63,766 bases of DNA, filler included, from Ministeria vibrans ATCC 50519 (GCA_943704425.1; 8 parts of 8 records of this genome joined end to end with filler, not necessarily neighbours in it); one strand, 5' to 3'; positions 1,877 to 16,572 are shown, counted from the first letter of the whole stretch. Translations and numbers: made by a program. Notes: generated from the letters alone by a model not told the origin.

Positions 1877-2055
1877 TGTTAAAAAGAAAAGAACGTGAAA
1901 GAGAATGATCAGATTTCAAAAATCAAATTTCACTTTTACTTTACACACCACCTTTTTGGCAGAGTCTTTGCTGGCATCGTCGTGTGTTCCCCCCACCTCC
2001 CTCGTCCCCCACCCCTACGCCTGTGCCGGCCCCCTTCGCTCTCTTGCCCTGTGGA

Positions 2056-2270
2056 ATGCGACTGTACACGCACAAACTACACCGTCGCAACAGACGGACG
2101 ACGCTCGCCAAGTACATTGCCAAGGTGAACGCTGCCGCGGCCGAGTGTCCTCAGTGTCTTGCCTCCAAAGCACCAGAAGAGGTGAACACACCGAAGAAGG
2201 ACCTTTGACTTGCTTTTGAAATCCCTTCACAACACTCACTCTCTCTATCACTTTGTTTCTTTCTTCCTCC

Positions 2271-2327
<57 letters not shown>

Positions 2328-2415
2328 CACTTTGTCTCTTTCTCCCTCCTCTCTCTCTCTCTCTATCACTTTGTCTCTTTCTCCCTCCTCTCTGTATCAC
2401 TTTGTCTCTTTCTCC

Positions 2416-2490
<75 letters not shown>

Positions 2491-2538
2491 CTTTGTCTCT
2501 TTCTCCCTCCCTCTCTCTATCACTTTGTCTCTTTCTCC

Positions 2539-2574
<36 letters not shown>

Positions 2575-2967
2575 NNNNNNNNNNNNNNNNNNNNNNNNNN
2601 NNNNNNNNNNNNNNNNNNNNNNNNNNNNNNNNNNNNNNNNNNNNNNNNNNNNNNNNNNNNNNNNNNNNNNNNNNNNNNNNNNNNNNNNNNNNNNNNNNNN
2701 NNNNNNNNNNNNNNNNNNNNNNNNNNNNNNNNNNNNNNNNNNNNNNNNNNNNNNNNNNNNNNNNNNNNNNNNNNNNNNNNNNNNNNNNNNNNNNNNNNNN
2801 NNNNNNNNNNNNNNNNNNNNNNNNNNNNNNNNNNNNNNNNNNNNNNNNNNNNNNNNNNNNNNNNNNNNNNNNNNNNNNNNNNNNNNNNNNNNNNNNNNNN
2901 NNNNNNNNNNNNNNNNNNNNNNNNNNNNNNNNNNNNNNNNNNNNNNNNNNNNNNNNNNNNNNNNNAC

Positions 2968-3061
<94 letters not shown>

Positions 3062-3557
3062 CCGCAGGACAACGACAGCCCCTCGCTCGCCAACACTTCG
3101 CCTGCATCCTCATCCGTTGAAACCCCGCTCCATGCGACGAGCAGTTCGCCCAAAAAGAAGAAGGAACCAGAGCCAGAGAAAGAGAAGACTGTCGACGAAT
3201 GGTGCCCAACACAACAGCCATAATAATTATGCGATTTTTATACGTTTTTACTTTTTTTTTTTCTGGAGTAGGACCCAACATCACGCCTCTCTCGTGCAAA
3301 AACTTGAAGAATTGCAAGCAGAGAAACACTCGCTGTTTGTCTCGCTGAAGCAAGTGCTTCAGGGAGACTCAAAGCGCAAGACCGCGGCGCCTCCACCTCC
3401 ACCACACCTCCCACCCTCCTTCTCAGGCACCTCCTCCTCCGTCTCTGGTGCACTTCCACTAGGACAGGTCCGTGTTACTACAGTCGGCACCTCTCAGTCC
3501 ATCTTTGGTGCAATGGGCCGTCCACACACCTCGCACTATCAGCACCTCCAATTGTAG
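2056..3557 (+). CDS. GPS2-like coiled-coil protein (fragmentary; interrupted by CT repeats and an N gap; start uncertain)
   Basis: Exon ~3271-3557 encodes KLEELQAEKHSLFVSLKQVLQGD, resembling the GPS2 coiled coil (LQEEKHQLFLQLKKVLHEE, from memory), followed by a Pro/Ser-rich tail. Confidence 0.45.
2240..3058. repeat. (CT)n tract punctuated by TATCACTTTGT(T/C)TC motifs; related tracts at ~780-980, 16680-16885, 39097-39300, 42430-42680 and 60198-60420
   Basis: Seen directly; such tracts abut many of the N gaps. Confidence 0.95.
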
Positions 3558-3679
3558 TACTAGTTTTGTTTTAGATTGTACCCAGCCTTGTGTATTAAAA
3601 GAAAACCCCCCTTTCTGTTCAATGTCCTTCCCTCACGCACACACTTTCTCTCTTTCTCGTTCACATCCACACCAAAATA

Positions 3680-6600
3680 TTACTTCGGCTTCGTCTTGAG
3701 TGGCCCTGCCGCCGGTGCCGCCGTCTTGCGCACAGCTCCCGCCGCCGGCGCTGCCTTTCGCACCGCCCCTCCTGACACCACCGCCTTTCTCTTTTTCTTT
3801 ACTCCTCCCACACTTGCCTCACCACTCTTCTTTGTCTTCTTCTCCGCCGCCCTCGTCGTCGCCGTTGGTGAAGCCACGACAACTGCTGCTGTTACTGCTG
3901 CCACTGGCTTCTCCGGCGTATACACAACAGACTCGCCCAGCGGTAGCTCAGGGCTCCCTCGCGCACTGTCTTCTGCCACATGGTACATGGTCCCCTCGGC
4001 AAGCACCTGTGCCGCCGTCTTCCCCTCTACCACCGTGATCGTCCCGTCTTCGTCACTCTGTCCAATGTGCATGGGGCCTGCTCCCAGACTCGCCTGCGTC
4101 GTGTCCTCCAAGGGCGTGCCCATGCCAGTCCCTTCGCGAGTCGCCGCGCGACTCGACTCGCTCCGCATTGAGGGATAAATATCTTCGCTGACGTACGATC
4201 GCACCTCATCCCGATCGTCTGCGTACGCTACCTCGTCACTCCGCATCTTTGTGATCTTCTCCTTTTGCCTTTGCGCATCCACCGGGATCTGCTCCACATT
4301 CTTGCCACCATGCTCCGCATCCGAGGGTTTGACGGCTGCTGCGAGTCGCTTCGCCTCCATTCCGGCCCGCCGCTTCGTCGCTCGCTCGCGTGCCCGCTCC
4401 GCCTGTCGCTTTCGGTCGGCCTCCAAGTAGCGCAGGTCCATTTGCGAGTTGCGAATCTTGGCCTTGCTGATCACGCCTGTGCTCTCCTGCTCCATTTCCT
4501 TGCCTGCCTCACGCGCTTGAGCCTCCGCCCGCCTCAGCACTTCCTCCAACTCCGCTTGTCCCACTCGACCCCGCACTTGTTCCTCCACCATAAGACGCGC
4601 CCGTCTGAACAAGTCGCGCATCTGTGCGTCGCTCTCGTCGCGCATCCCTTTCATGTCGCGCATGCGTTCCTCGTCCCACGCACGATCCAACTCTAGCACT
4701 TCCTTCTCATGCTCCAACATCAGTCGGTGCTTTTGCTCAACGTAGCTATCCTGCTGCAGGAATACCACGGCCCCCTGCAGCGTCAATGTCTTGACCATCT
4801 GTACCCCCGTGATGGACAGGCGCACGGTGGAGCGCATCAATCGCGCCGCCCCTTCACGATCTGTGTCGCCCCGCTGCAGCCGTCGCATGCGTGCCTCGCG
4901 AATCCGCTGCTGCACTGCCATTTGCTGCTGCGTCCGAATGTTGTTCAGCGTCACATTGAAGCGGTCTAGGTCACGTTCGTGCTCCTGCAACTTCTTGACG
5001 GCGACATTGTCGGTCGCAAGTGTGCCGCCACGTGCCAGACTTTGCATCAGCGCCGCCTGTTCGTCCCGCACCGAGTCCTGCTGCTGTCGCTTGCGCTCAA
5101 TCTCGCGTCGTGCCACCTCCAGCTGCATTTGCGTCAGCAACTCGCCCACGCGCACCTCCTCCTTCTTCATCTCCATCATGCGCTCGCTCAGAATGCACTC
5201 GCGCAGCGTCTCATACTCCTTGTCGGCTTCCACCTCGTGTCGCCGCAGCAGCTCGCGCATCTCGCCCATGTGCTGCACCAACACCTGGTCGGTGCCTTGC
5301 ATGCGATCACCCAGCTGCTGCTGGCCGAGATGTCGCTGTCGCTCGTAGCGCTGTCGTCGGATAAGCGTCAGCAGCTCGCGCTCTTTAGCCGCTGCCAACT
5401 GCTCATAGTAGAGTCCGCGGCGTCGCACTCGTCGCAACGCAACGCTCTGTCCAAAGCGCGCCACTTGCTCCTCGTGCTCAAAGAGCACCTGGTCGTGCTC
5501 TTGCTCGTGCCGCGCCAGTGCTCCCCCCGAAATGTTCGCCACAATCTCCGAGTCGATGTCTTCAAGGGCACGCGCGTCGTCTGCTTCGCGCAACTGCTCT
5601 GCATGCCACAGCGTGCGCTTTGTGGCCAACTGAGTGCGATTGAGGGCCGCCAGCTGCTCCCGCTCGTATTGGTGTTTGCTGTCGTACCGCCCCAGCAAAT
5701 CCGACTGCTCGGCACGCACTCGTTCACGCTGGTTGTTGGTCAGGTTGCGTGCGCGCCCCAACACCTTCTGCTCGTTGGTTGCCTCGGCGCCCGCCATCAT
5801 TTCGCGCACCTGCTCGGACATTTCGCGCACGAGTGCCATCAATTCCTGTCCCGCCTGCTCATCAATGCGTTTTACAATTGCATACTGGCGTGCGCGTCGG
5901 GCGCGGCACTCGGCCGCATGGCGACGCGCATAATCAACGAATGGACGGGCGAGGGAGAGCGCCTCTTCGCGTGTCGCTCCGCGGTTCCCCTTGAAGTCCT
6001 CCTCTTCACCCTCTAGCGTGCCCTGTAGTACCTCCTGTGACGACATGCTGGCAACGACCGCCAGCTGCTCACGCAGCACCTGGGTGAGCTGGCGGTGCAC
6101 AAGACGTTCCTTCTTGGCGAGCTGCTTGAGCATCTTGCGCGCATCGCTCGTGTAGTCCACCACCTGCATCACATTGGCAATGCCCATGTTGCGCTCGCGC
6201 GATGACAAAATCCCTTGAGCCGTCAGGTCGTTGAGAACGTTGATCTGAAACGCCTTCCACGTGTGCACCCGATTGACAAAAAAGTCCAGCTCCAGTTCAC
6301 GTTCGCGAAAAAGCGCCAGGCGTGTCTCCATCTGTTCGTTGAGCACCAGCTCACAACGCTCCAGCTCGACCGAGGCATTGCGGTCCAGCTCGGCCAGATC
6401 GTCCGCAATTCGCACACGTAGTTCCGCCACTTGCGCATCGCGCATCTCCGTCACTTCGCGCGTCACATCTGCTATCAGCGACTTCTCAATAAGCTTGAGC
6501 GCGGCACGTCGCTTGAATCGGAAGTCCATGCGCAACTCTTCGCGTTTCTCCTCGCTCTCAATGCGAAAGACGCGCGCGCGGTTTCGCAGCTCACTCTCAC

Positions 6601-7912
6601 GCGCATCCCGCAACTGATGTGTCTGCAAATCGTCCACGTCGATGCCACCGTCGTCGACCGCTCTCATCTGGTTGTGCAACGTGCCATCGAGATCCTGCGC
6701 TTTGCCGGCCGCGCGACGCCGCGCCTCCTGCAGCTCCAACACCTCTCGGTTGATGTCCTGCATCTCGTTGGCCAGCTCATGCATGAGCACGTCCGTCTCG
6801 CTGGCAATCTGGTCGCGCAACACGGCGCGCCATCGTTTGTTCTCGGTCTCAAGAAAGGCACTCATGTCATTCATAGACTTTTCAAAACTTTCGCGCAGTT
6901 TGTGGTCGGCAATCGACGAGACACGATGTGACTGGCGCACCGTCGCAAGCAGCACCAACATGCGATCGTAGACAAGGTCGTTGCGTTCGCGTGCAATAGA
7001 CTCCTCAGCGTCGATGGTCGCGTGCAAGTCGCGTCGGACTGCTTCCTCCTCTGCAATGACGAGGTTGGTGGCGGTGAGAAGGGGAACAATGCTCTCCGCT
7101 GGATGGTTGTCGACGACGGCATTTTCGCCGGGCACCAGGATATTCTTGTTGCTGCTATTGTTGTTTGTGCGTTGCGGTTGTGGTTGCGAGCCAAGTAGGA
7201 CGCGCAGACGGGCGTTCATGATGCCCTCGGTCGATCCGGCAGCACTGGCGCCGCCCACTGATGAGGGGGTCGCGGGCATACTGAGATGGCCATTGCCACC
7301 ACCGCCGGCGCTGTTGATTACTCCGGCAAAGCCAAAGGCACTGCGTTGCTGGTCGCGTGCACTACCAGTGGGTGATGGGTGACGGTCGTGGTTGAGCACA
7401 AACTTTTTAAAGCGGCCCGCCAGGGTTTGCACGCCGGCCTGTTCTGCCTGACCCGACGCCTCGTTCTTGTCAATTTGGTTCATCAATTGGAGTGCGGTTG
7501 TGGTAGCGGCGCCTGTGGGCACGGGTGTCGACGACGCACCCCCATACTGGTGCTGTTGTTGCCGTGGCTGACGCGCATGTTGTGAGCTCTGGCGCGACGA
7601 CGGGGGCTGATCTGCTGCGTCCGTGTGAGGGCCTTTGTCCTTGGCATGTTGTTTTTTGCCCTGTGTCGCTTTGACGGGTGCTTTGCCGAATCCTTTTTCT
7701 TCGTCACCGCTTGCACCCGGTCGGTCGTGGCCCATCGACGAGTTTGAGCGTCCAATGGCCTGTTGACGATGCAGGGAGAAGTTGTGGTGCGCATCTTTCA
7801 TACGTCGCTGCTGGCTTCGCCGCACTCGATATGCAACTAACAGCACCATGAGCGCACCAAAGACAAAGCCACAGATGGCTCCCACCACTGTTCCGACGTG
7901 TTGAAAGGTCAT
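3680..7912 (-). CDS. EVC2: EVC2/limbin-like protein: N-terminal TM anchor, long coiled coil, Lys-rich C-terminus (1410 aa, single exon)
   Basis: TM segment VGTVVGAICGFVFGALMVLLVAY followed by RVRR. Block SIARERNDLVYDRMLVLLATVRQSHRVSSIADHKLRESFEKSMNDMSAFLETENKRWRAVL matches the remembered pattern of EVC2 (LEACRTQISKDIIALLLKNLTSSGHLSPQVERKMSAVFKKQFLLLENEIQEEYDRKMVAL). LNDLTAQGILSSRER motif is shared with the EVC-like neighbour. Head-to-head with that neighbour. Confidence 0.65.
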   Translation of the reverse strand: MTFQHVGTVVGAICGFVFGALMVLLVAYRVRRSQQRRMKDAHHNFSLHRQQAIGRSNSSMGHDRPGASGDEEKGFGKAPVKATQGKKQHAKDKGPHTDAADQPPSSRQSSQHARQPRQQQHQYGGASSTPVPTGAATTTALQLMNQIDKNEASGQAEQAGVQTLAGRFKKFVLNHDRHPSPTGSARDQQRSAFGFAGVINSAGGGGNGHLSMPATPSSVGGASAAGSTEGIMNARLRVLLGSQPQPQRTNNNSSNKNILVPGENAVVDNHPAESIVPLLTATNLVIAEEEAVRRDLHATIDAEESIARERNDLVYDRMLVLLATVRQSHRVSSIADHKLRESFEKSMNDMSAFLETENKRWRAVLRDQIASETDVLMHELANEMQDINREVLELQEARRRAAGKAQDLDGTLHNQMRAVDDGGIDVDDLQTHQLRDARESELRNRARVFRIESEEKREELRMDFRFKRRAALKLIEKSLIADVTREVTEMRDAQVAELRVRIADDLAELDRNASVELERCELVLNEQMETRLALFRERELELDFFVNRVHTWKAFQINVLNDLTAQGILSSRERNMGIANVMQVVDYTSDARKMLKQLAKKERLVHRQLTQVLREQLAVVASMSSQEVLQGTLEGEEEDFKGNRGATREEALSLARPFVDYARRHAAECRARRARQYAIVKRIDEQAGQELMALVREMSEQVREMMAGAEATNEQKVLGRARNLTNNQRERVRAEQSDLLGRYDSKHQYEREQLAALNRTQLATKRTLWHAEQLREADDARALEDIDSEIVANISGGALARHEQEHDQVLFEHEEQVARFGQSVALRRVRRRGLYYEQLAAAKERELLTLIRRQRYERQRHLGQQQLGDRMQGTDQVLVQHMGEMRELLRRHEVEADKEYETLRECILSERMMEMKKEEVRVGELLTQMQLEVARREIERKRQQQDSVRDEQAALMQSLARGGTLATDNVAVKKLQEHERDLDRFNVTLNNIRTQQQMAVQQRIREARMRRLQRGDTDREGAARLMRSTVRLSITGVQMVKTLTLQGAVVFLQQDSYVEQKHRLMLEHEKEVLELDRAWDEERMRDMKGMRDESDAQMRDLFRRARLMVEEQVRGRVGQAELEEVLRRAEAQAREAGKEMEQESTGVISKAKIRNSQMDLRYLEADRKRQAERARERATKRRAGMEAKRLAAAVKPSDAEHGGKNVEQIPVDAQRQKEKITKMRSDEVAYADDRDEVRSYVSEDIYPSMRSESSRAATREGTGMGTPLEDTTQASLGAGPMHIGQSDEDGTITVVEGKTAAQVLAEGTMYHVAEDSARGSPELPLGESVVYTPEKPVAAVTAAVVVASPTATTRAAEKKTKKSGEASVGGVKKKRKAVVSGGAVRKAAPAAGAVRKTAAPAAGPLKTKPK

Positions 7913-8207
7913 GTATGGGAAAAAAGAAAGAAGAAAAACTGACGAAAAAGGAAAATAATTAAGGAATCTGGTCCGTACCCCATGGCAACCAAGTCAACAA
8001 TAGGCAGCAAGTGCCGCTTTCTTCACCCGCTACCTACTACCTGTATCACGCAAGACACCATTGGAGTTGAACAAGCGGGAAATTTCATTGGGGTGCTGAG
8101 TTATGTTGAATGTACATGTTTAGACGTAATCAGTCAACGTCAGACCTTTTGAAATATTTATGTGGTATGCCTTGAACTTGAGTAAAATAGAATAATTTGC
8201 TCTTGAT
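7913..8207. promoter_or_regulatory. Putative bidirectional promoter (295 bp between divergent start codons) with an X-box-like RFX site GTACCCCATGGCAAC at 7975-7989
   Basis: Divergent ATGs at 7912 and 8208. The motif has a perfect ATGGCAAC half-site of the RFX consensus GTTGCCATGGCAAC. Confidence 0.6.
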
Positions 8208-8763
8208 ATGCAGCGTCACGTTGTAGGCATGTTGCTGATGGCTGTGCCGTGTCTGGCACAGCCACAGAGCGTGCTTGGTGCGGCGCTGGGCACTGTGGGC
8301 GGCATTTTATTGGGAGCACTACTTATGATGGTCTTTTTGTATTACCACGGTCGTCAGAACAGAGTTCAGCGCGTCGCACCCGCACCCGAAGAGCCCATTG
8401 TGATGCATACCATGAATGGACGGCGCAGTGCGCACAATGGCACTCCCATTTCAAGTGTCGCGAGCGTTGCGCCGGCAACGCAGTACCACATTCGCTCGTC
8501 GAACAACACGCCGTCGTCGCAGCACACGACGGGGCGACTCAGCCATGGAGGTGCCTCGCCCACGCAGGCACAGCCCATTGCGACGGTCCACGAAGAGGAC
8601 GCTCGCAGTGGCGGCGGTAGTTTCCATCGCGTTGCTCCTTCGCCCCACGACGGCGACGATCTCTCCGACATCCACGACACGGGCGACGTCGATCCTCTTG
8701 GACAGAGTTTTGCCACCGGCGATGGTTCCATTCACAGGTGCGGTTTACTTAATGCGTTGGATT

Positions 8764-8794
<31 letters not shown>

Positions 8795-10778
8795 NNNNNN
8801 NNNNGGCCATTCTGCACTGCAACAAACAGCGGATCGGCGCCTGTGGTTTAATATTGATCGGCACTGTTGTTGTGCGATTCAGTGAAACGGGCATTGTGGA
8901 GCTCACTCGGGAACTACGATTGCCTGAGTTGACGCCTGATACGAGTATCATTGAGGTGATGCGGTTGCGCAACGAAAACGAGTCGGAAATGCTGTTGCAA
9001 AAGGAGGATGTGCGTGAGACGATGCAGTTGGAGCAAGAGATGCGAGAAGAGAAGGTGTGTGTGTGTGTGAGTTTTGTGTTTCTTTTTTTTTCTTCTTTTT
9101 GGTCTGATATCATCGATGCGTTTGCTTTTAAGGACGCTGCCTACGTGGACCGGCTGCGACATGCCATTGAACAGCTGAAGTACCAGGGCAAGATTGATGA
9201 GGACGATTTCTGGGAGTTGGTGAATGCTTACAAATCGGCGGTGGAAGAGGTGGAGGACACGATTGACTTTGAGCTGCAGCAGCGCATTGACACGATTGTG
9301 GCGGAGGGACTTGATGCAGAACTAGAGACTGAAAAATGTGAAGATGCGCGTCGGCTGATGGTGCAAAAGAGAGCGTCCGCACTGGAAGAACAGCAACATC
9401 AAGTGAGTGTTATTATTCTTATAATTATGTATAATTATAATTATAATTATGTGTGTGTATGTGAAAGAGAGAGAGTGAGGCATGTATGCATTTTTATTAT
9501 TATTATTAATAATCATTATTATTATTAATATTTTTATTCGTTTTTATTACGTCTAATAGTATTATAATAATAATAATTATTTTATTATTTTTTTACGACC
9601 AGTACTGATTTTTATTGTTGAATGACAGGTGCTTGAGAACCTTGCTTCGGCGGCAGACCTGACCGAGGACGAGGTGGATAACATTATGCATGCACTGGTG
9701 AAGGACATGTCGATGCTAGACGAACTTATCTACAACGACACGCTCAAAATGTTGTTGTTTTTCCGACGCAAACTGCACGGACGAGTGAACATGGCACGTC
9801 TACAGGCGCAGCGACTTGCACAAGAGACAGAGAAGCTCTCGACGTTTCAGGCGCAGGTAGCAAGTACCATTGATCACTTGTGGGAGAAGGGGACTTTGTC
9901 GTCGCGCGATCGCGATGAATTGTTGGAGCGCGTAGAGGGCGAGCGAGAACGTATTGCGATCGAAGCTAGACGGTATGATTTTTCTTCTTCTTTTTGTTTT
10001 GACCTTTGATTGTTCGATATCGACATCGATATCGGTTGAAATGAGTCTTTTTATAATTTGATTGGTTACAGGGCACGGGAGAAGGAGGAAGTGACACTGA
10101 GCAAACGGTTGAGTCAGGAGAAGGCAGATGCACGAGCTAAGACACATGCGGAACAGGAGCGGGCGGTGGCCGAGAGCGAAACGGCCGTACGTAAGGTGGA
10201 CCCGGCGACCTTTATCCGACTGCGACACGCCCTGCTGCAACAGCAGCGCATGGAGCGCAATGAGCTTGATCAGCAGCTGGACAAGGGAGCGATGAGCGAG
10301 TTGGAGGATGTGAGAAAAATGGCGTCCGACCGCACCCGCGGCGTTATGATTGCGTCCGCCGAAAAGGTATTATCAATATAATTATAATAATAATTATTAG
10401 GGTTTTGGTTGTGAGTGTTAAATTTATGAAATTTGTATGAACTTGTGAATAGTTCTTTCGAGAAATGCGGGAAAAGGGACAACTGAGCGAAGAGGAAGAG
10501 GAGCAGTCGGTTCGACGACTAAGACAGACGCTGGAGACATTGAATGACGTGCTGGCGGCTGAGAGACGCAGACAGGTCAAGGAGCTGTCGCAGAAGCTCA
10601 AAGATGCAACGAAGCGATGGCAAAGCCAAAGTGAAGAGGATCAAGTAATTCCAAGAAAAATATTATAATTATCATGCGCAACCGCTTGTGGCTGTCTAGT
10701 TTTTTATGTTTATAATTATAATAATTTATTTTATAATAATATAATAATAATAATAATAATAAGAAGAAGAAGAAGAAA

Positions 10779-10811
<33 letters not shown>

Positions 10812-10813
10812 TT

Positions 10814-10880
<67 letters not shown>

Positions 10881-12041
10881 GTAATAATATTTTTGTAGCG
10901 AGAACTCGATAAGTTTATGAAGACCCAAGTGAGTCTGGTTCAAAAGCTGTTAGAGCGACGTCGCAGCGAAATGAGCGACCTTCAGCGACGCAACATTGTC
11001 TTTGAGCAACACCAACAGGTGCAAAAGACACAACTAAAAGATGTCTTACACACGTCAATTACTGACAATATTTTTTTTGGTGTGTGACTTGCGCAGATGC
11101 GAAATTTGCATAACATGCTGACGATTCGACGGAAGCGTGAAATGAAGATTTTGGACCAGAGATTGGCGGAGCGACGGGTATTGCGGATGCATCAGCTGAA
11201 GAAGAAGTATGATGAGGAGATGCGGCTGATTGGGAGCAGGGGAGGGAGCAAGGGAAGTGTTGAGGCAAAGAAGCGTGCAAGCGAGGGGCACGAGCGAGAG
11301 GTGGAGCGCATGCTGCGCCATTTAAATGAGGTGCGCGACAATGCGCTGTACAATATATGCGAGCGGTTTACTCAGGAAAGTGAGGAGGCACATCGCGAGG
11401 CAGAGGAGGCAACCACCACGGTACTGTTAAAGCTGCGAGTCGACGAGAGTGGGCGAGCGGCAGTGTTGCAAAAGCGCCACACCACGTTCATGCAGGTGCA
11501 GCGGGTGCTCATTCGCGAGGCCATTGGGCAGGTGGAACTGGAAGAGATCAAGCAGGCGGGCATGGAAGCACAGCACAAGAGCGACATTGAGCGACTGGCC
11601 AAGGTGATTTCGACGCAACGCACCGAGCAGGAGCAAATATTCCAAGAGAAGTTGCGCACACGACAACTCAAGAAGGAACAACGCGAGCAGCGTCTCAAGG
11701 AGGAGGCAGAAAACTCGGACGAGAAAAAGAGCTTTGATGTGCGCACGCTCATTATCCAAACGACCGCCTTTCGTCTCATGCGCAACGTGCTTAACAAGCG
11801 CCACCGCCAACGGCTCGCAGCCAAACGCAAAGAGCTCGACGCCGAGAAATCGCGACACATCGAGCATGTGCGCGCGCAACAACGCGACGCTGCCGCAAGG
11901 CAAGTAGGCGTCTTTTTTGCCGTGGCCGCCGAGGAGCTTGAAAACTTAAAGGTCGGCTTTACGGCAGCCGAAACAGACGAGATCCGTCAGATGATGGTGG
12001 GCAAGGAAGTCGACGGCAATGAGGACGAGAGCAGTGTATAA
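8208..12041 (+). CDS. EVC: EVC (Ellis-van Creveld protein)-like, ~950 aa, 8 exons (approx. 8208-8737, 8883-9054, 9133-9402, 9629-9972, 10072-10366, 10454-10644, 10899-11018, 11097-12041)
   Basis: All introns are GT-AG and frame-consistent. Remembered human EVC matches occur in the same order: VLGAALGTVGGILLG ~ LLGAALGLGLGLWLG; QLEQEMREEK..QLKYQGKIDEDDFWELV ~ HLDTALRQEK..DLLPKKKSDDELYQKIL; GRVNMAR ~ GRAHMAK; IDHLWEKGTLSSRDRDELL ~ LELLAGEGKLSGRQKEELL; DPATFIRLRHALLQQQR ~ DPEKFLEAFHEVLERQR. Confidence 0.75.
10730..10889. repeat. (TAA)n microsatellite in an EVC intron
   Basis: Long aataataat run seen directly. Confidence 0.95.
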
Positions 12042-12352: not shown

Positions 12353-15300
12353 ATGCGTCTTGTGATTGCCCTCTCGTTGCTCGTCGCTTCGTCGTTCGCG
12401 CAAGACGAACCGGACATCTTTCACGCCATCAAGGCAATCACCACCAAGCGCCTGTCTCCTCGGTATGCCCATGGCTCGGCTGCGTACAATGGACTCGTCT
12501 GCGTGTTTGGCGGCTTTTCAGATACAAATGGTATGAAGCACACCTCTTCGCTCCCTCCGCAGCCGCCTTTCCCCTTGGCTTGCAACGTAATTCTTTATAT
12601 CTACCACTTTATTTGTGTCGGGATCGAGGAGACGTCTCGAATTGTCGCACAAATCAACAATATTATTATATATTTTTTTTCTAACACCTTCTTTCACAGC
12701 TACCGTTGCGCTCAATGATACGTGGCTCTACTCGGCCGTCTCCTCTGTCTGGATACAGCTGGACGAACACAATGTCGAGCACACTTCCGCTGCGGAAGCC
12801 CTGCTGAGCCCGCCCCCGGTCGGGTTCGCTTCGTTTGAACCCGTGCGAGATCCTCGTCAAAATACCACGACGGACGAGCCGCCCATCGTCGGCATTCTCT
12901 TTGGAGGCCTTGGTGCAGTCGATATGGATTCGCCTGAGCTCAGTCCAGTCAACGGCGACCTCTGGATTTTCTCGTTTCTCTCGCTGAAGTGGACGCCCAT
13001 CAACCCCCTCTCGTCGTTGCGTCCGGCCGCTCGTTTCGCCCACACGTGCACGACAACGGACGATACGCTCACGGACAAGACACTCATGTTCTGCTTTGGT
13101 GGGCGCACGGCCAACGGCACCGTCTTCGGCGATCTGTGGCAGTTCTCTTTGGCGTCGTACGAGTGGACAGAGCTTTGGAGCGTCCCGTCCCTCTCCTTTC
13201 CTCCCTTTGTGAAATTTCCCTTTACCATCCCTGGCTCGCCCTGTCTTACAGTGCCCGCCAATACCACTCGCGACGCTCCGGCCCCTCGCTTCCTCCATAT
13301 TTCATTTAATTTGCCCAGTCACCCCGAAGGCGTCTTCATCGCTGGCGGACAGTCCCAATGCGGCGGTGGCTGCTTTGTCAACGGCGCCAACCTCGCTGAT
13401 GGCGAGTGCTTCGACACATGGATGTACAACGTAACACGACGCAGTTGGACGCAGGTGCGCTCAGAGTCCACCGAGTTTCTCTTGTACCTTCCCACGTCGT
13501 GCACCGGCATGCAGGCGCAAGTGGGCAACGTTGGCGATAGCTCCGGCCCCATCTACAGCGCCCTTGTTGAGGGCGCTTCGCGCTACTCCATCACCGACAT
13601 TGTCATGGTTTTTTCATCCAACTTCTCACTCTCCTACTCGGACGACATCTTATTAGGCTCGTGGACGATTGTCTCGCGCTACATGTCCATCAACCGGCGC
13701 CACCGCCGCTTCGACTCGCTTGTCGTCGTCTCTTTCGCCGCTCAACACGACACTGATATTCATCTTGTCAGCATTGCTGGCGAGACGGTTTCCACCCCAT
13801 ACGTTTCGCTTGACGACTCGTGGGCCATTGCCGAAGACTCCTCTATCAATTCCTGGGTCGACGTTTCCCCGCCCGCCACTGCCCCGCCCTTCTACGACAC
13901 CAACGGTGTGCTCATTCAGGACACGTACTATTATGTCTTCGGTGGTCAAGTACGACAAAAACAAAAGAAAACAAAAAAGAAACATGAAGAGAAGAACGAG
14001 ATGGATGTGTCGAGTGAGAATATTTTTTTTTTCGTAGAGTACTCAAACACCAATTTCGGGTACCTTTTGGCGACTGGATTTGAAACTAAGAGAATGGTCA
14101 CACGTCGTCATCAACTTTCTGGACTTTAGCATTCGGACCATTTCGCCGCCGGAGATGATTGGTCAGTCATTGACACCCTATGGAGGTCAAAATAATGCAC
14201 TGCTGTTGTTCGGTGGAGCGTTCCCTCCGCGCGGCGTTGTTTACAACGAAGTGTATGCGTTCAATCTGACTAGTGCTCCGTCTGGTGGTGAGGCATGGAG
14301 TGTGCTGGACACGGGGCAGAATAAAGGTTTGCCCCAGCCGTCGGGGCGCTATCGTCATGCAGCATTTGCCTGCGGTGTGCTACGCTTGTGTGTCTTTGGC
14401 GGCGTGGGAGTGCATAAGACCTCGCCTGACGACTCCTACCCAACTTTCCAGTCGACCAACGACACTTGGTTGTTGATTGGCGATCCTCAGGCGCCCTTTC
14501 TTCGTGCCACCTGGATGCGCATTGCCCTAAACTCGTCAGAGACTCCATTGTCTCGCTCACAGGCGGCCGTCACGCAACGCGACCGGTGTGGCTACCTCTA
14601 CGGCGGCCTCGACATTGTTGGCAATCCGCTCGATGATCTCTGGTCACTCTGTTATGATGGCGAGAATAACACTACGTTCACCTGGCGCAAACTCCTGTCT
14701 CACCCGCACTCCGCGTCGAACCCACCGCCTCTCTTTGCGGCCACACTCTTCCTTATGGGTTCGAAACTGGTGCTCTATGGGGGTGGCACGCAGACCAACG
14801 CCGGCTCGCCCGTCATTGGATATTACCTCTTCACGTACAATCTCGAGACCTCGTTTTGGAATATAACCACAAACACGCCTGCCAAGGACTCGATCATCGA
14901 CGCCTATCCCGAGGCACCCGTCGGCTCCATTGGCATGATGCTTGTGCAGACGGACGAGGGGAGTCGCACCGTTACCATCTATGGCGGCATCAATGCACTA
15001 CACGACTCCGACTACATCCCAGGCGCCGTCGGAACACTCACGCTGAGCTGCTCACCTGGCTTTTACTCGTCCGACTACCTCACGCGCGACTGCCTTCCGT
15101 GTCCTATTGGCACGTTTCTGAGTGGCGAAGACCCTGACGCACGCAATTGCACGCACTGCCCATACAAGCTGACAACGCCCTTCTCGGGCAGCACGTCGGT
15201 CAACAACTGTACCAGGTGCGCCTTGGACGCATGCAACAATCAAGGCAGCTGCACTATAAACAAGGACAAGGTCATCCAGTGTGACTGTAAGTTTCCCTAC

Positions 15301-16572
15301 AAGTGGTCCAACGGCTGCGAGACACCTTGGCAAGGTATTCTCATTGCGGCAGTTGTTTGTCTCGTCGCCATTGTGGTTACGGTGGTTAAGTACATCCACA
15401 CGCGACGCCATGCCGAGAGCGAGCGCGCCGCGCGCGCCGAAGCTGATCAGCTAGTGCGCAAACTGACAAACAAGGTGTCGCTTGCGGACAGCATGAACAT
15501 CCGTGAGAAGGAGTTGCGCCACAAAATCCTCCTTGACGAAGGGGGCGCTAGCAAGGTGTACCGTGCGACCCTCCGAGGCGAATTTGTCGTTGTAAAGTAC
15601 CTACGACTTCTCCACCTTGACAACGACGACGACCACGTCGTGCGCCAGGGATTCACGGAGGAAGCGCAGCTGCTGCGCGCTGTGTTGCATCCAAACATTG
15701 TCAATTTTATAGCGTGCAGTACGGCCGAACAGGATGGCCACACTGTGCCGTACATCATTGTGGAGTATCTCGAACTAGGATCGCTGCACAAGCTGCTGGT
15801 TGAACGCACCGACTTGGAGTTGTCGTGGAAGCAGCGCACTCGCTTTATGCTGGACGCAGCGCGCGGCGTTGCATGTTTACACCGACGTGGCATTGTCCAC
15901 TGTGACATCAAGTCGCTCAATCTGCTTGTTGCATCGGACTTTACTGTAAAAGTGGCCGATTTGGGAGCGGCACGGATGTGGCAGCTGTACGAGAAGCACA
16001 GAGGACCCGTGCGCGTGCCACAGGTATCGGGGCGCAGCACGTCGACAACCATGCGCCGCGGTCACTATCACGAGATGGAGGAACCGCTCTTAGCGCGCAC
16101 GGTCGAGTCATACACGTCGATTGATGTAGCGACTACTGATCATGAGGCTGGTCGAGACGAAGACACAGCGCAGGCGATGCCGGTTCGCGCGACCTCGATA
16201 CACGACAAGACACTGTCCAAAGCAATGGCGGAACAGATCTTCTCTGAGCTGTGGCGCGCTCCGGAGACGTATGCCAGAGGGTACGTGGCCGAGTTGCCTG
16301 TGGACGTGTATGCATTTGGCGTGACCATGAGTGAAGTGGCGATGCGTGCACTGCCCTACGACGACATTCCCGACGACCAACTGTATCTCATCCGTGACCT
16401 TGTACTCAATGGGACTAGGCCCGACTTGGGCGATGCAGTATTACGTCGCTACTGGCCTACAGGGTATGAGGAGCTCATGAGGCGCTGTTGGGCTGAGCGG
16501 CCCGAAGACAGACCAGTCTTTCGTGACATTGAGGATGATATGGAAATTATTGTTAGGAGAGTCGGAATGTGA
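12353..16572 (+). CDS. Receptor kinase: signal peptide, Kelch-repeat ectodomain, Cys-rich/EGF-like region, TM, TKL-group kinase (3 exons: 12353-12530, 12700-~13949, 14038-16572)
   Basis: Signal peptide MRLVIALSLLVASSFA; repeated Kelch motifs (PxxRxxH...FGG...DLW); CSPGFYS...CLPCPIGTF; TM GILIAAVVCLVAIVVTVV; kinase motifs VVVK, HPNIVNF, HCDIKSLNLLV, KVADLG, WRAPE, DVYAFGV, CWAERPEDRP. Confidence 0.9.

Follow-up and report, generated by a model that had tools for sequence, protein, structure and literature searches.

Positions 3680-12041 of a 63,766-nucleotide stretch of DNA from Ministeria vibrans ATCC 50519 (GCA_943704425.1; eight parts of eight records joined end to end with filler, together referred to as the window) were found to carry two genes of the EVC/EVC2 family, arranged head to head. 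The layout, the gene models, their splicing and transcription, the family membership and the gene content of the genome were shown by the analysis. We consider it likely that the locus is an expressed, divergent EvC-family pair in a ciliated single-celled holozoan, in which the minus-strand gene is of the EVC2 type and the plus-strand gene is an old paralogue, most likely of the EVC type. The features of the pair are as follows.

3680-7912, minus strand: EVC2-type gene, a single unbroken, intronless open reading frame (ORF) of 1410 amino acids
4880-7099, minus strand: conserved EVC2-like core of its product (residues 272-1011), from the alignment to the animal EVC2 hidden Markov model (HMM)
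6191-6235, minus strand: L..L...G.LSSR.R motif (residues 560-574), also in the animal EVC2 consensus
7823-7891, minus strand: N-terminal membrane helix (residues 8-30) followed by a basic stretch, as read from the translation
7913-8207, no strand: shared intergenic region of 295 bp, between the ATG codons at 7912 and 8208
8208-12041, plus strand: plus gene of eight exons with GT-AG introns and one open frame of 955 codons (955 amino acids)
8208-8737, plus strand: exon 1, encoding an N-terminal stub, a membrane helix (approximately 8271-8345) and a low-complexity linker
8738-8882, plus strand: intron 1, with a poly-T run and an assembly gap at 8795-8804, spliced out in the contig from run X6
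8883-9054, plus strand: exon 2, whose end (8995-9054) matches the exon-2 block of animal EVC
9133-9402, plus strand: exon 3, with the GKID block 19 residues beyond the exon-2 block
9629-9972, plus strand: exon 4, with the I..L...G.LSSR.R motif at 9869-9913
10072-10366, plus strand: exon 5, the best-conserved block of the family
10453-10644, plus strand: exon 6, its splicing confirmed by the transcript contig
10899-11018, plus strand: exon 7, fitting the 117-120 nucleotides that separate exons 6 and 8 in the X6 contig
11097-12041, plus strand: exon 8 (314 amino acids) and stop codon

The preliminary description of this locus had proposed two large, divergently transcribed genes, each with an N-terminal membrane helix, with start codons 295 bp apart; the ORF, the exon model and the transcripts confirmed this. 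The pair as a whole occupies 8.4 kb including the spacer, and the introns of the plus gene are 78-254 bp long. A spliced contig of 2837 nucleotides in run X6 (record 22; blocks 8211-8734, 8880-9043, 9130-9402, 9629-9971, 10071-10364, 10451-10644 and 11094-12013) reproduced all exon junctions of the plus gene model, with the remaining 117 nucleotides representing exon 7. The contig joins 8734 to 8880 and bridges the gap at 8795-8804; thus no exon is concealed in the gap, and the plus frame is continuous. The transcript of the minus gene was represented in the same RNA-derived run by a contig of 3851 nucleotides extending to 7907, and a plus-gene transcript contig begins at 8156, so both genes are transcribed. 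A misjoin between the two genes had been raised beforehand as a possible source of the arrangement. In run X2 (record 13), from a separate 2022 study, a genomic contig of 3419 nucleotides is unbroken over 7000-8751 and crosses the intergenic region intact; there is therefore no misjoin at 7913-8207. The stretch was present in the runs of 10 studies, each of the three other studies compared gave contigs at least 99% identical to it, and it was also found in seawater and algal-culture metagenomes.

Several irregularities were noted in these data. Run X6 is labelled 'DNA?', yet it contains fully spliced contigs of both EvC-family genes and is therefore RNA-derived, or at least cDNA-containing; although the sequences are at least 99% identical, it carries another organism label than the source run. 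The 37 bases just past the gap (8805-8841) recur in another context in the RNA-like runs X6, X10 and X15, flanked on each side by more than 250 unrelated bases, and the interval 8752-8841 lies outside the coverage of the 2022 genomic contigs. It is possible that this part of the intron is misplaced, or that it was copied as a fragment from a transcribed locus elsewhere. In addition, 53 bases within the part of exon 1 that encodes the membrane helix (8293-8345) are absent from one X15 contig. The skipped length is not divisible by three, and the skip may reflect faulty assembly, sequence variation or unusual splicing.

The 295-bp region at 7913-8207 presumably acts as a bidirectional promoter. 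No X-box (RFX) motif was matched in the spacer at up to one mismatch, and X-box control of the shared promoter was dropped as an explanation, with X-box-like matches across the window not above chance. These matches include a near-palindromic sequence (GTTGCGCCGGCAAC) at 8466-8479 within exon 1 of the plus gene and a half-site-like sequence (CCATGGCAAC) at 7976-7990 in the spacer.

By similarity of its product, the minus gene is of the EVC2 (limbin) type. An exhaustive phmmer search with residues 270-1200 against a library of 1.84 billion representative proteins returned six matches. Five were animal proteins (from oyster, limpet, freshwater mussel, amphioxus and acorn worm), all of which carry the PF12297 EVC2_like domain and aligned over 590-780 residues at 22-24% identity, with E-values of 1.5e-11 to 2.4e-5. 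The sixth, a bacterial repeat protein aligned over 25 residues, was not counted as real. An HMM built solely from 53 animal EVC2 proteins matched the minus protein at 90.8 bits in a single alignment covering HMM positions 324-1026 (approximately 700 positions), and the decoys (the reversed sequence and 20 shuffles) scored -3 bits or less; the likeness to EVC2 is therefore not a coiled-coil artefact. In the ESM Atlas, the nearest clusters were EVC/EVC2 (scores of 0.82-0.87 over the minus core and plus exon 8), which was treated as a lead only.

Several other searches came back empty. Pfam gave only noise on all pieces (the models included PF12297, with PF28139 EVC_N and PF28141 EVC_C not among them), and a six-frame search of the whole genome with PF12297 gave no match at E-values up to 10. 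Word-indexed homology searches, run on the minus core and on a six-sequence alignment, found nothing, their lists being filled by the proteins that shared the most words. Two metagenome scans gave no match, and an exact look-up of the minus protein returned no record. The expectation that profile searches would place the proteins beyond generic coiled-coil matches thus held for the custom animal EVC2 HMM and failed for PF12297 itself, which had no direct match.

The plus gene was searched exon by exon; the joined protein was made solely to check the frame and stop codons. The animal EVC2 HMM matched exon 5 at 36.9 bits (positions 623-718), exon 6 at 15.5 bits and exon 4 at 14.8 bits (positions 508-611). 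The decoys of exons 5, 6 and 4 reached at most 1.3, -0.9 and 2.7 bits, respectively, and no shuffled or reversed version of any exon exceeded 5.3 bits. Exons 1, 2, 4 and 5 fell in colinear order along the HMM. A family profile run against the whole 29.7-Mb assembly matched the minus gene and plus exons 4 and 5 only (E-value of 3.5e-6 for exon 5); the genome therefore has only these two family members. Exon 5 matched acorn-worm EVC2 at 22.6 bits and had no phmmer match in the minus protein and, because it is nearer to animal EVC2 than to the product of the adjoining gene, the duplication must be old. By these comparisons, the plus gene is an old paralogue within the EVC/EVC2 family. The paralogy suspected in the preliminary description is thereby borne out, as the animal EVC2 HMM, the family profile and phmmer placed both genes in the EVC/EVC2 superfamily.

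Further features point towards EVC. The end of plus exon 2 resembles coding exon 2 of EVC from amphioxus and acorn worm; it matched amphioxus EVC at 16.4 bits by phmmer and the animal EVC2 HMM at just 3 bits. An HMM of the block scored 14.5 bits compared to 2.7 bits for shuffles, and the sole match to the animal EVC exon-2 block in the whole genome was plus exon 2 (18.1 bits, E-value of 0.093). A KID block follows 19 residues past the exon-2 block in the plus protein and animal EVC alike, and the two blocks are separated by a phase-0 intron no more than two codons away from its position in animal EVC. The plus gene holds the same position relative to the EVC2-type gene as EVC does relative to EVC2. 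Its product is 955 amino acids long (839-967 in the invertebrates examined, with roughly 840-990 expected of an EVC), and the build of the first exon matches animal EVC. For exon 8, the nearest ESM Atlas cluster was 'Ellis-van Creveld syndrome protein' with EVC_C/EVC_N (score of 0.87), again a lead only. A tblastn comparison of the plus exons with animal EVC/EVC2 loci was too insensitive a method, and iterated jackhmmer was discarded as a test of EVC against EVC2, having drifted to EVC2 exons. Given the layout, the architecture, the borderline short block and the language-model lead, we lean towards orthology of the plus gene with EVC. The identities first proposed for the two strands thus fared differently: EVC2 type stands for the minus gene, whereas the plus gene is not established as an EVC orthologue.

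Both proteins have an N-terminal hydrophobic helix rich in glycine and alanine, with basic residues next and then a very long, highly charged sequence. In the minus protein, as read from the sequence, seven residues lie ahead of the helix (residues 8-30) and approximately 1380 mostly charged residues follow it; the plus protein has a stub of approximately 22 residues and a helix at approximately 22-46, in a total of 955 amino acids. This layout suggests that in both proteins very little lies outside the cell and that the cytoplasmic tail is very large. The L..L...G.LSSR.R motif noted in the preliminary description is real and common to the two proteins, standing at residues 560-574 of the minus protein and residues 81-95 of plus exon 4 (where it begins I..L), and its G.LSSR part also stands in the consensus of the animal EVC2 proteins. 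The tail of the minus protein has a PE.PLG-like motif followed by a KKKRK cluster, in the same order as RPEPLG and poly-K in invertebrate EVC2 tails, which have RPEP[IL]G, LPPL and poly-K motifs in common. In animals, the W-peptide of the EVC2 C-terminus, comprising an FV/IV motif and an RRKKN-type basic motif, binds EFCAB7 (PMC10413113). Neither LPPL nor FV was found at the expected spacing in the minus tail, and thus there is no clear W-peptide.

The head-to-head EVC2-EVC layout was confirmed in oyster, limpet, two amphioxus species and acorn worm, using the gene of the phmmer match, or of a cluster member, and a neighbour whose product carries EVC_N and/or EVC_C. The animal genes lie on opposite strands, their models separated by 1.1-4.8 kb. 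A PRELI-domain gene and a family-A DNA polymerase gene come after EVC2 in both amphioxus species, and the EVC of B. belcheri is divided between two gene models. Like the pair described here, the animal EVC-EVC2 complex is made of two paralogues, each crossing the membrane once and extending a long helical tail into the cytoplasm, and their genes are arranged 5'-to-5'. The sizes are comparable (839-967 and 1153-1696 amino acids in the invertebrates examined, versus 955 and 1410 here), and the G.LSS motif, several colinear blocks and an organism with cilium and transition-zone genes are further points of likeness. The differences are that the identity is only approximately 22-24% and that PF12297 gives no direct match here; that the EVC2-type protein of the window lacks an ectodomain and a clear W-peptide; that the known client of the animal complex is absent here, with no Smoothened, Hedgehog or SUFU found; and that one of the two genes is intronless, whereas the invertebrate genes have many introns and span 8-50 kb, compared to 8.4 kb for the whole pair here.

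The assembly is a draft of 29.7 Mb in 2860 contigs, and its gene content fits a marine, ciliated, non-animal holozoan. EF-1α has the insertion characteristic of opisthokonts, in a version near that of animals. SH2 domains were found at no fewer than 22 loci, one of which adjoins a kinase with a Src-type catalytic loop; this is far fewer than in sequenced choanoflagellates. Three integrin β genes and adhesion G-protein-coupled receptors (GPCRs) with GPS motifs were also present. A cilium and its transition zone are indicated by IFT57 and three B9-domain genes. Light-harvesting proteins were looked for in the assembly and not found; for this reason, and in view of the opisthokont-type EF-1α, the idea of a photosynthetic alga was discarded. 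Six-frame HMM searches of the draft detected no Wnt, no Hedgehog signal domain (HH_signal) and no SUFU. The 'Frizzled' matches were rejected as Frizzled/Smoothened receptors, being explained by the adhesion GPCR family, and no Frizzled/Smoothened-type receptor was found in the assembly. The preliminary description had taken the organism for an apparently unicellular holozoan; the view of it as a ciliated, non-animal holozoan in which no Smoothened or Hedgehog was detected is supported by EF-1α, SH2, integrin β, IFT57, B9 and the searches for Wnt, for the receptor, for the signal domain and for SUFU, as far as a draft assembly allows. The integrin β genes and the modest SH2 count argue against a choanoflagellate; the lineage is probably another one, and a flagellated organism of filasterean grade would suit, judging by the known traits of those groups.

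Elsewhere in the window and the assembly, a tract of low GC content (31%) and strong skew at 2000-3600, with long (CT)n arrays at 2235-2574 and 2971-3059, separates a sulfatase fragment (23-991) from the 3' end of the minus gene. The downstream neighbour (12615-16572) is a receptor-kinase gene whose product combines Kelch repeats and an Ephrin_rec_like module with a membrane helix and a kinase domain of the TKL type. It was rejected as a holozoan tyrosine kinase, as the catalytic loop HCDIKSLN is of the TKL type and taxonomically uninformative; its two overlapping ORFs suggest an intron or a frameshift. In the cytosolic HSP90 gene (G000:C1392:42000-50000), a gap of approximately 1.5 kb has GT and TAT/ATT repeats on either side, a repeat style also seen in the introns of the plus gene.

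A number of points weigh against the preferred account of an EVC2-type gene paired with a probable EVC. PF12297 matched neither protein directly at E-values up to 1, and the minus protein has no long ectodomain (some 200 or more residues in EVC2), where the animal EVC2 alignment has approximately 270 columns before the helix. The EVC-specific signal is thin, with a genome-wide E-value of 0.093 for the exon-2 block, and it was lost once a fourth sequence, from oyster and misaligned by MAFFT, was added. The animal EVC exon-3 block gave nothing genome-wide and 5 bits locally, which is not significant alone. Plus exon 5 resembles EVC2 and not any EVC fragment recovered, and the plus gene has no intron position in common with the animal EVC2 genes. 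The EVC comparison set consisted of partial invertebrate EVC genes. Finally, the genes reported as absent were sought by six-frame HMM searches in an assembly that is a draft.

The strongest alternative, which we regard as possible though clearly less probable, is that the pair corresponds to EVC3.1 and EVC3.2, found in choanoflagellates and some animals, and is either non-orthologous to EVC and EVC2 proper or pro-orthologous to both. According to the preprint by Sigg et al. (bioRxiv 10.1101/153437), EVC3.1 and EVC3.2 were detected in choanoflagellate cilia, and EVC, EVC2, IQCE and EFCAB7 orthologues are stated to be absent from choanoflagellates; with reference to Pusapati et al. 2014, EVC3 is proposed there to be the ancestral form, independent of Hedgehog. 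Compared by description only, EVC3.1 and EVC3.2 resemble the present pair as EvC-family paralogues that occur outside animals. The genome studied here has exactly two family genes too, the minus protein escapes PF12297, and the similarity of the plus gene is mixed, partly EVC-like and partly EVC2-like, all of which would suit an EVC3 pair. However, the exhaustive search matched only animal PF12297 proteins whose genes adjoin EVC_N/EVC_C genes (the neighbours being assumed to be EVC and not EVC3.1), and neither a choanoflagellate protein nor a second group of animal proteins was matched, though the library should include such proteomes. A head-to-head layout is not mentioned for EVC3.1 and EVC3.2 in the accessible text of that preprint, and this integrin β-bearing, SH2-poor organism probably belongs to another lineage than their choanoflagellate carriers. 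If the pair were nevertheless EVC3, a known pre-animal family would be extended to another protist, with the head-to-head layout added.

It is improbable that the two genes arose by a lineage-specific duplication of a single ancestral EvC-like gene, with the resemblance to the animal layout being coincidental. Several blocks of both genes do fit the EVC2 profile better than the available EVC fragments, which speaks for such a duplication. Against it, the two proteins can barely be aligned with one another (best score of 20 bits, E-value of 0.09, in exon 4), exon 5 of the plus gene is recognizable in acorn-worm EVC2 and not in the minus protein, and one gene has seven introns while the other has none. 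Moreover, a block, its spacing and a near-identical intron site are common to the plus gene and animal EVC.

That the matches merely reflect the composition of two unrelated, charged, coiled-coil membrane proteins is already largely refuted and very improbable, as the large HMMER bias corrections, the lack of a Pfam match and the empty word-indexed searches have to be set against five out of five real matches in 1.84 billion proteins from one family, colinear over 590-780 residues, decoys that scored below zero bits, and a family profile that matched no other coiled-coil gene of the 29.7-Mb genome. A contig from an animal contaminant, whose layout would then be the expected animal one, is equally improbable: every named relative is an animal protein, but the identity to animal EVC2 is just 22-24%, the intronless 4.2-kb ORF, the short introns of the other gene (78-254 bp) and the 295-bp spacer do not suit an animal, the AT-rich, GT-repeat intron style recurs at other loci of the assembly, the stretch is found across the runs of 10 studies with contigs at least 99% identical in each of the three others compared, and the genome has no detected Wnt or Frizzled.

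Returning to the account of an EVC2-type gene and an old, probably EVC-type paralogue, the animal proteins offer a model of how the pair may work. EVC and EVC2 in mammals form a single-pass, mutually stabilising heterodimer located just distal to the transition zone (PMC10413113). Each protein here would likewise be a single-pass protein with almost no outside part, a Gly/Ala-rich helix, a positive stop-transfer signal and a helical cytoplasmic tail of 700-1300 residues, and the two could pair through their membrane helices and helical tails, as in the animal heterodimer. The shared 295-bp promoter may keep the amounts of the two subunits matched, in line with the stabilisation of each partner by the other in mammals. 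By homology, the complex would lie at the flagellar base, beneath the ciliary membrane and close to the transition zone, and may act as a scaffold for a membrane signalling client. As no Smoothened, Hedgehog domain or SUFU was found, this client would be one other than the Hedgehog pathway. Heterodimer formation, ciliary location and function are thus inferred here by analogy with the animal complex.

The ciliary EvC module and the paired gene layout probably predate animals and Hedgehog signalling. We give roughly even chances to the fuller proposal that the EVC/EVC2 duplication, the head-to-head layout and a two-subunit EvC membrane scaffold at the base of the cilium already existed in the unicellular ancestors of animals, at the latest in the ancestor shared with this lineage, and that the scaffold served some client besides Smoothened before its recruitment to Hedgehog signalling. 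If true, this would run against the published account, in which EVC and EVC2 emerged within animals, alongside ciliary Hedgehog signalling, from an older, EVC3-like gene. An EvC function that precedes Hedgehog is in itself not a new idea; the preliminary description had taken a ciliary role of the family before animals to be undescribed, but the preprint already proposes it from EVC3 in choanoflagellate cilia (10.1101/153437). What may be new is an EVC2-type gene whose sole detectable relatives are animal EVC2, the head-to-head pairing of such a gene with a family paralogue, and the occurrence of this gene in a single-celled lineage that probably lies outside the choanoflagellates.

To our knowledge, the human ciliopathy genes EVC and EVC2 are known solely as helpers of Smoothened. 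The present pair would date the paired gene layout to before animals, and the conserved bidirectional layout suggests that matched subunit amounts have been under selection for a very long time. A ciliated protist with such a pair, and with no detected Smoothened, Hedgehog or SUFU, would offer a system in which the original, Hedgehog-independent task of the EvC scaffold may be studied.

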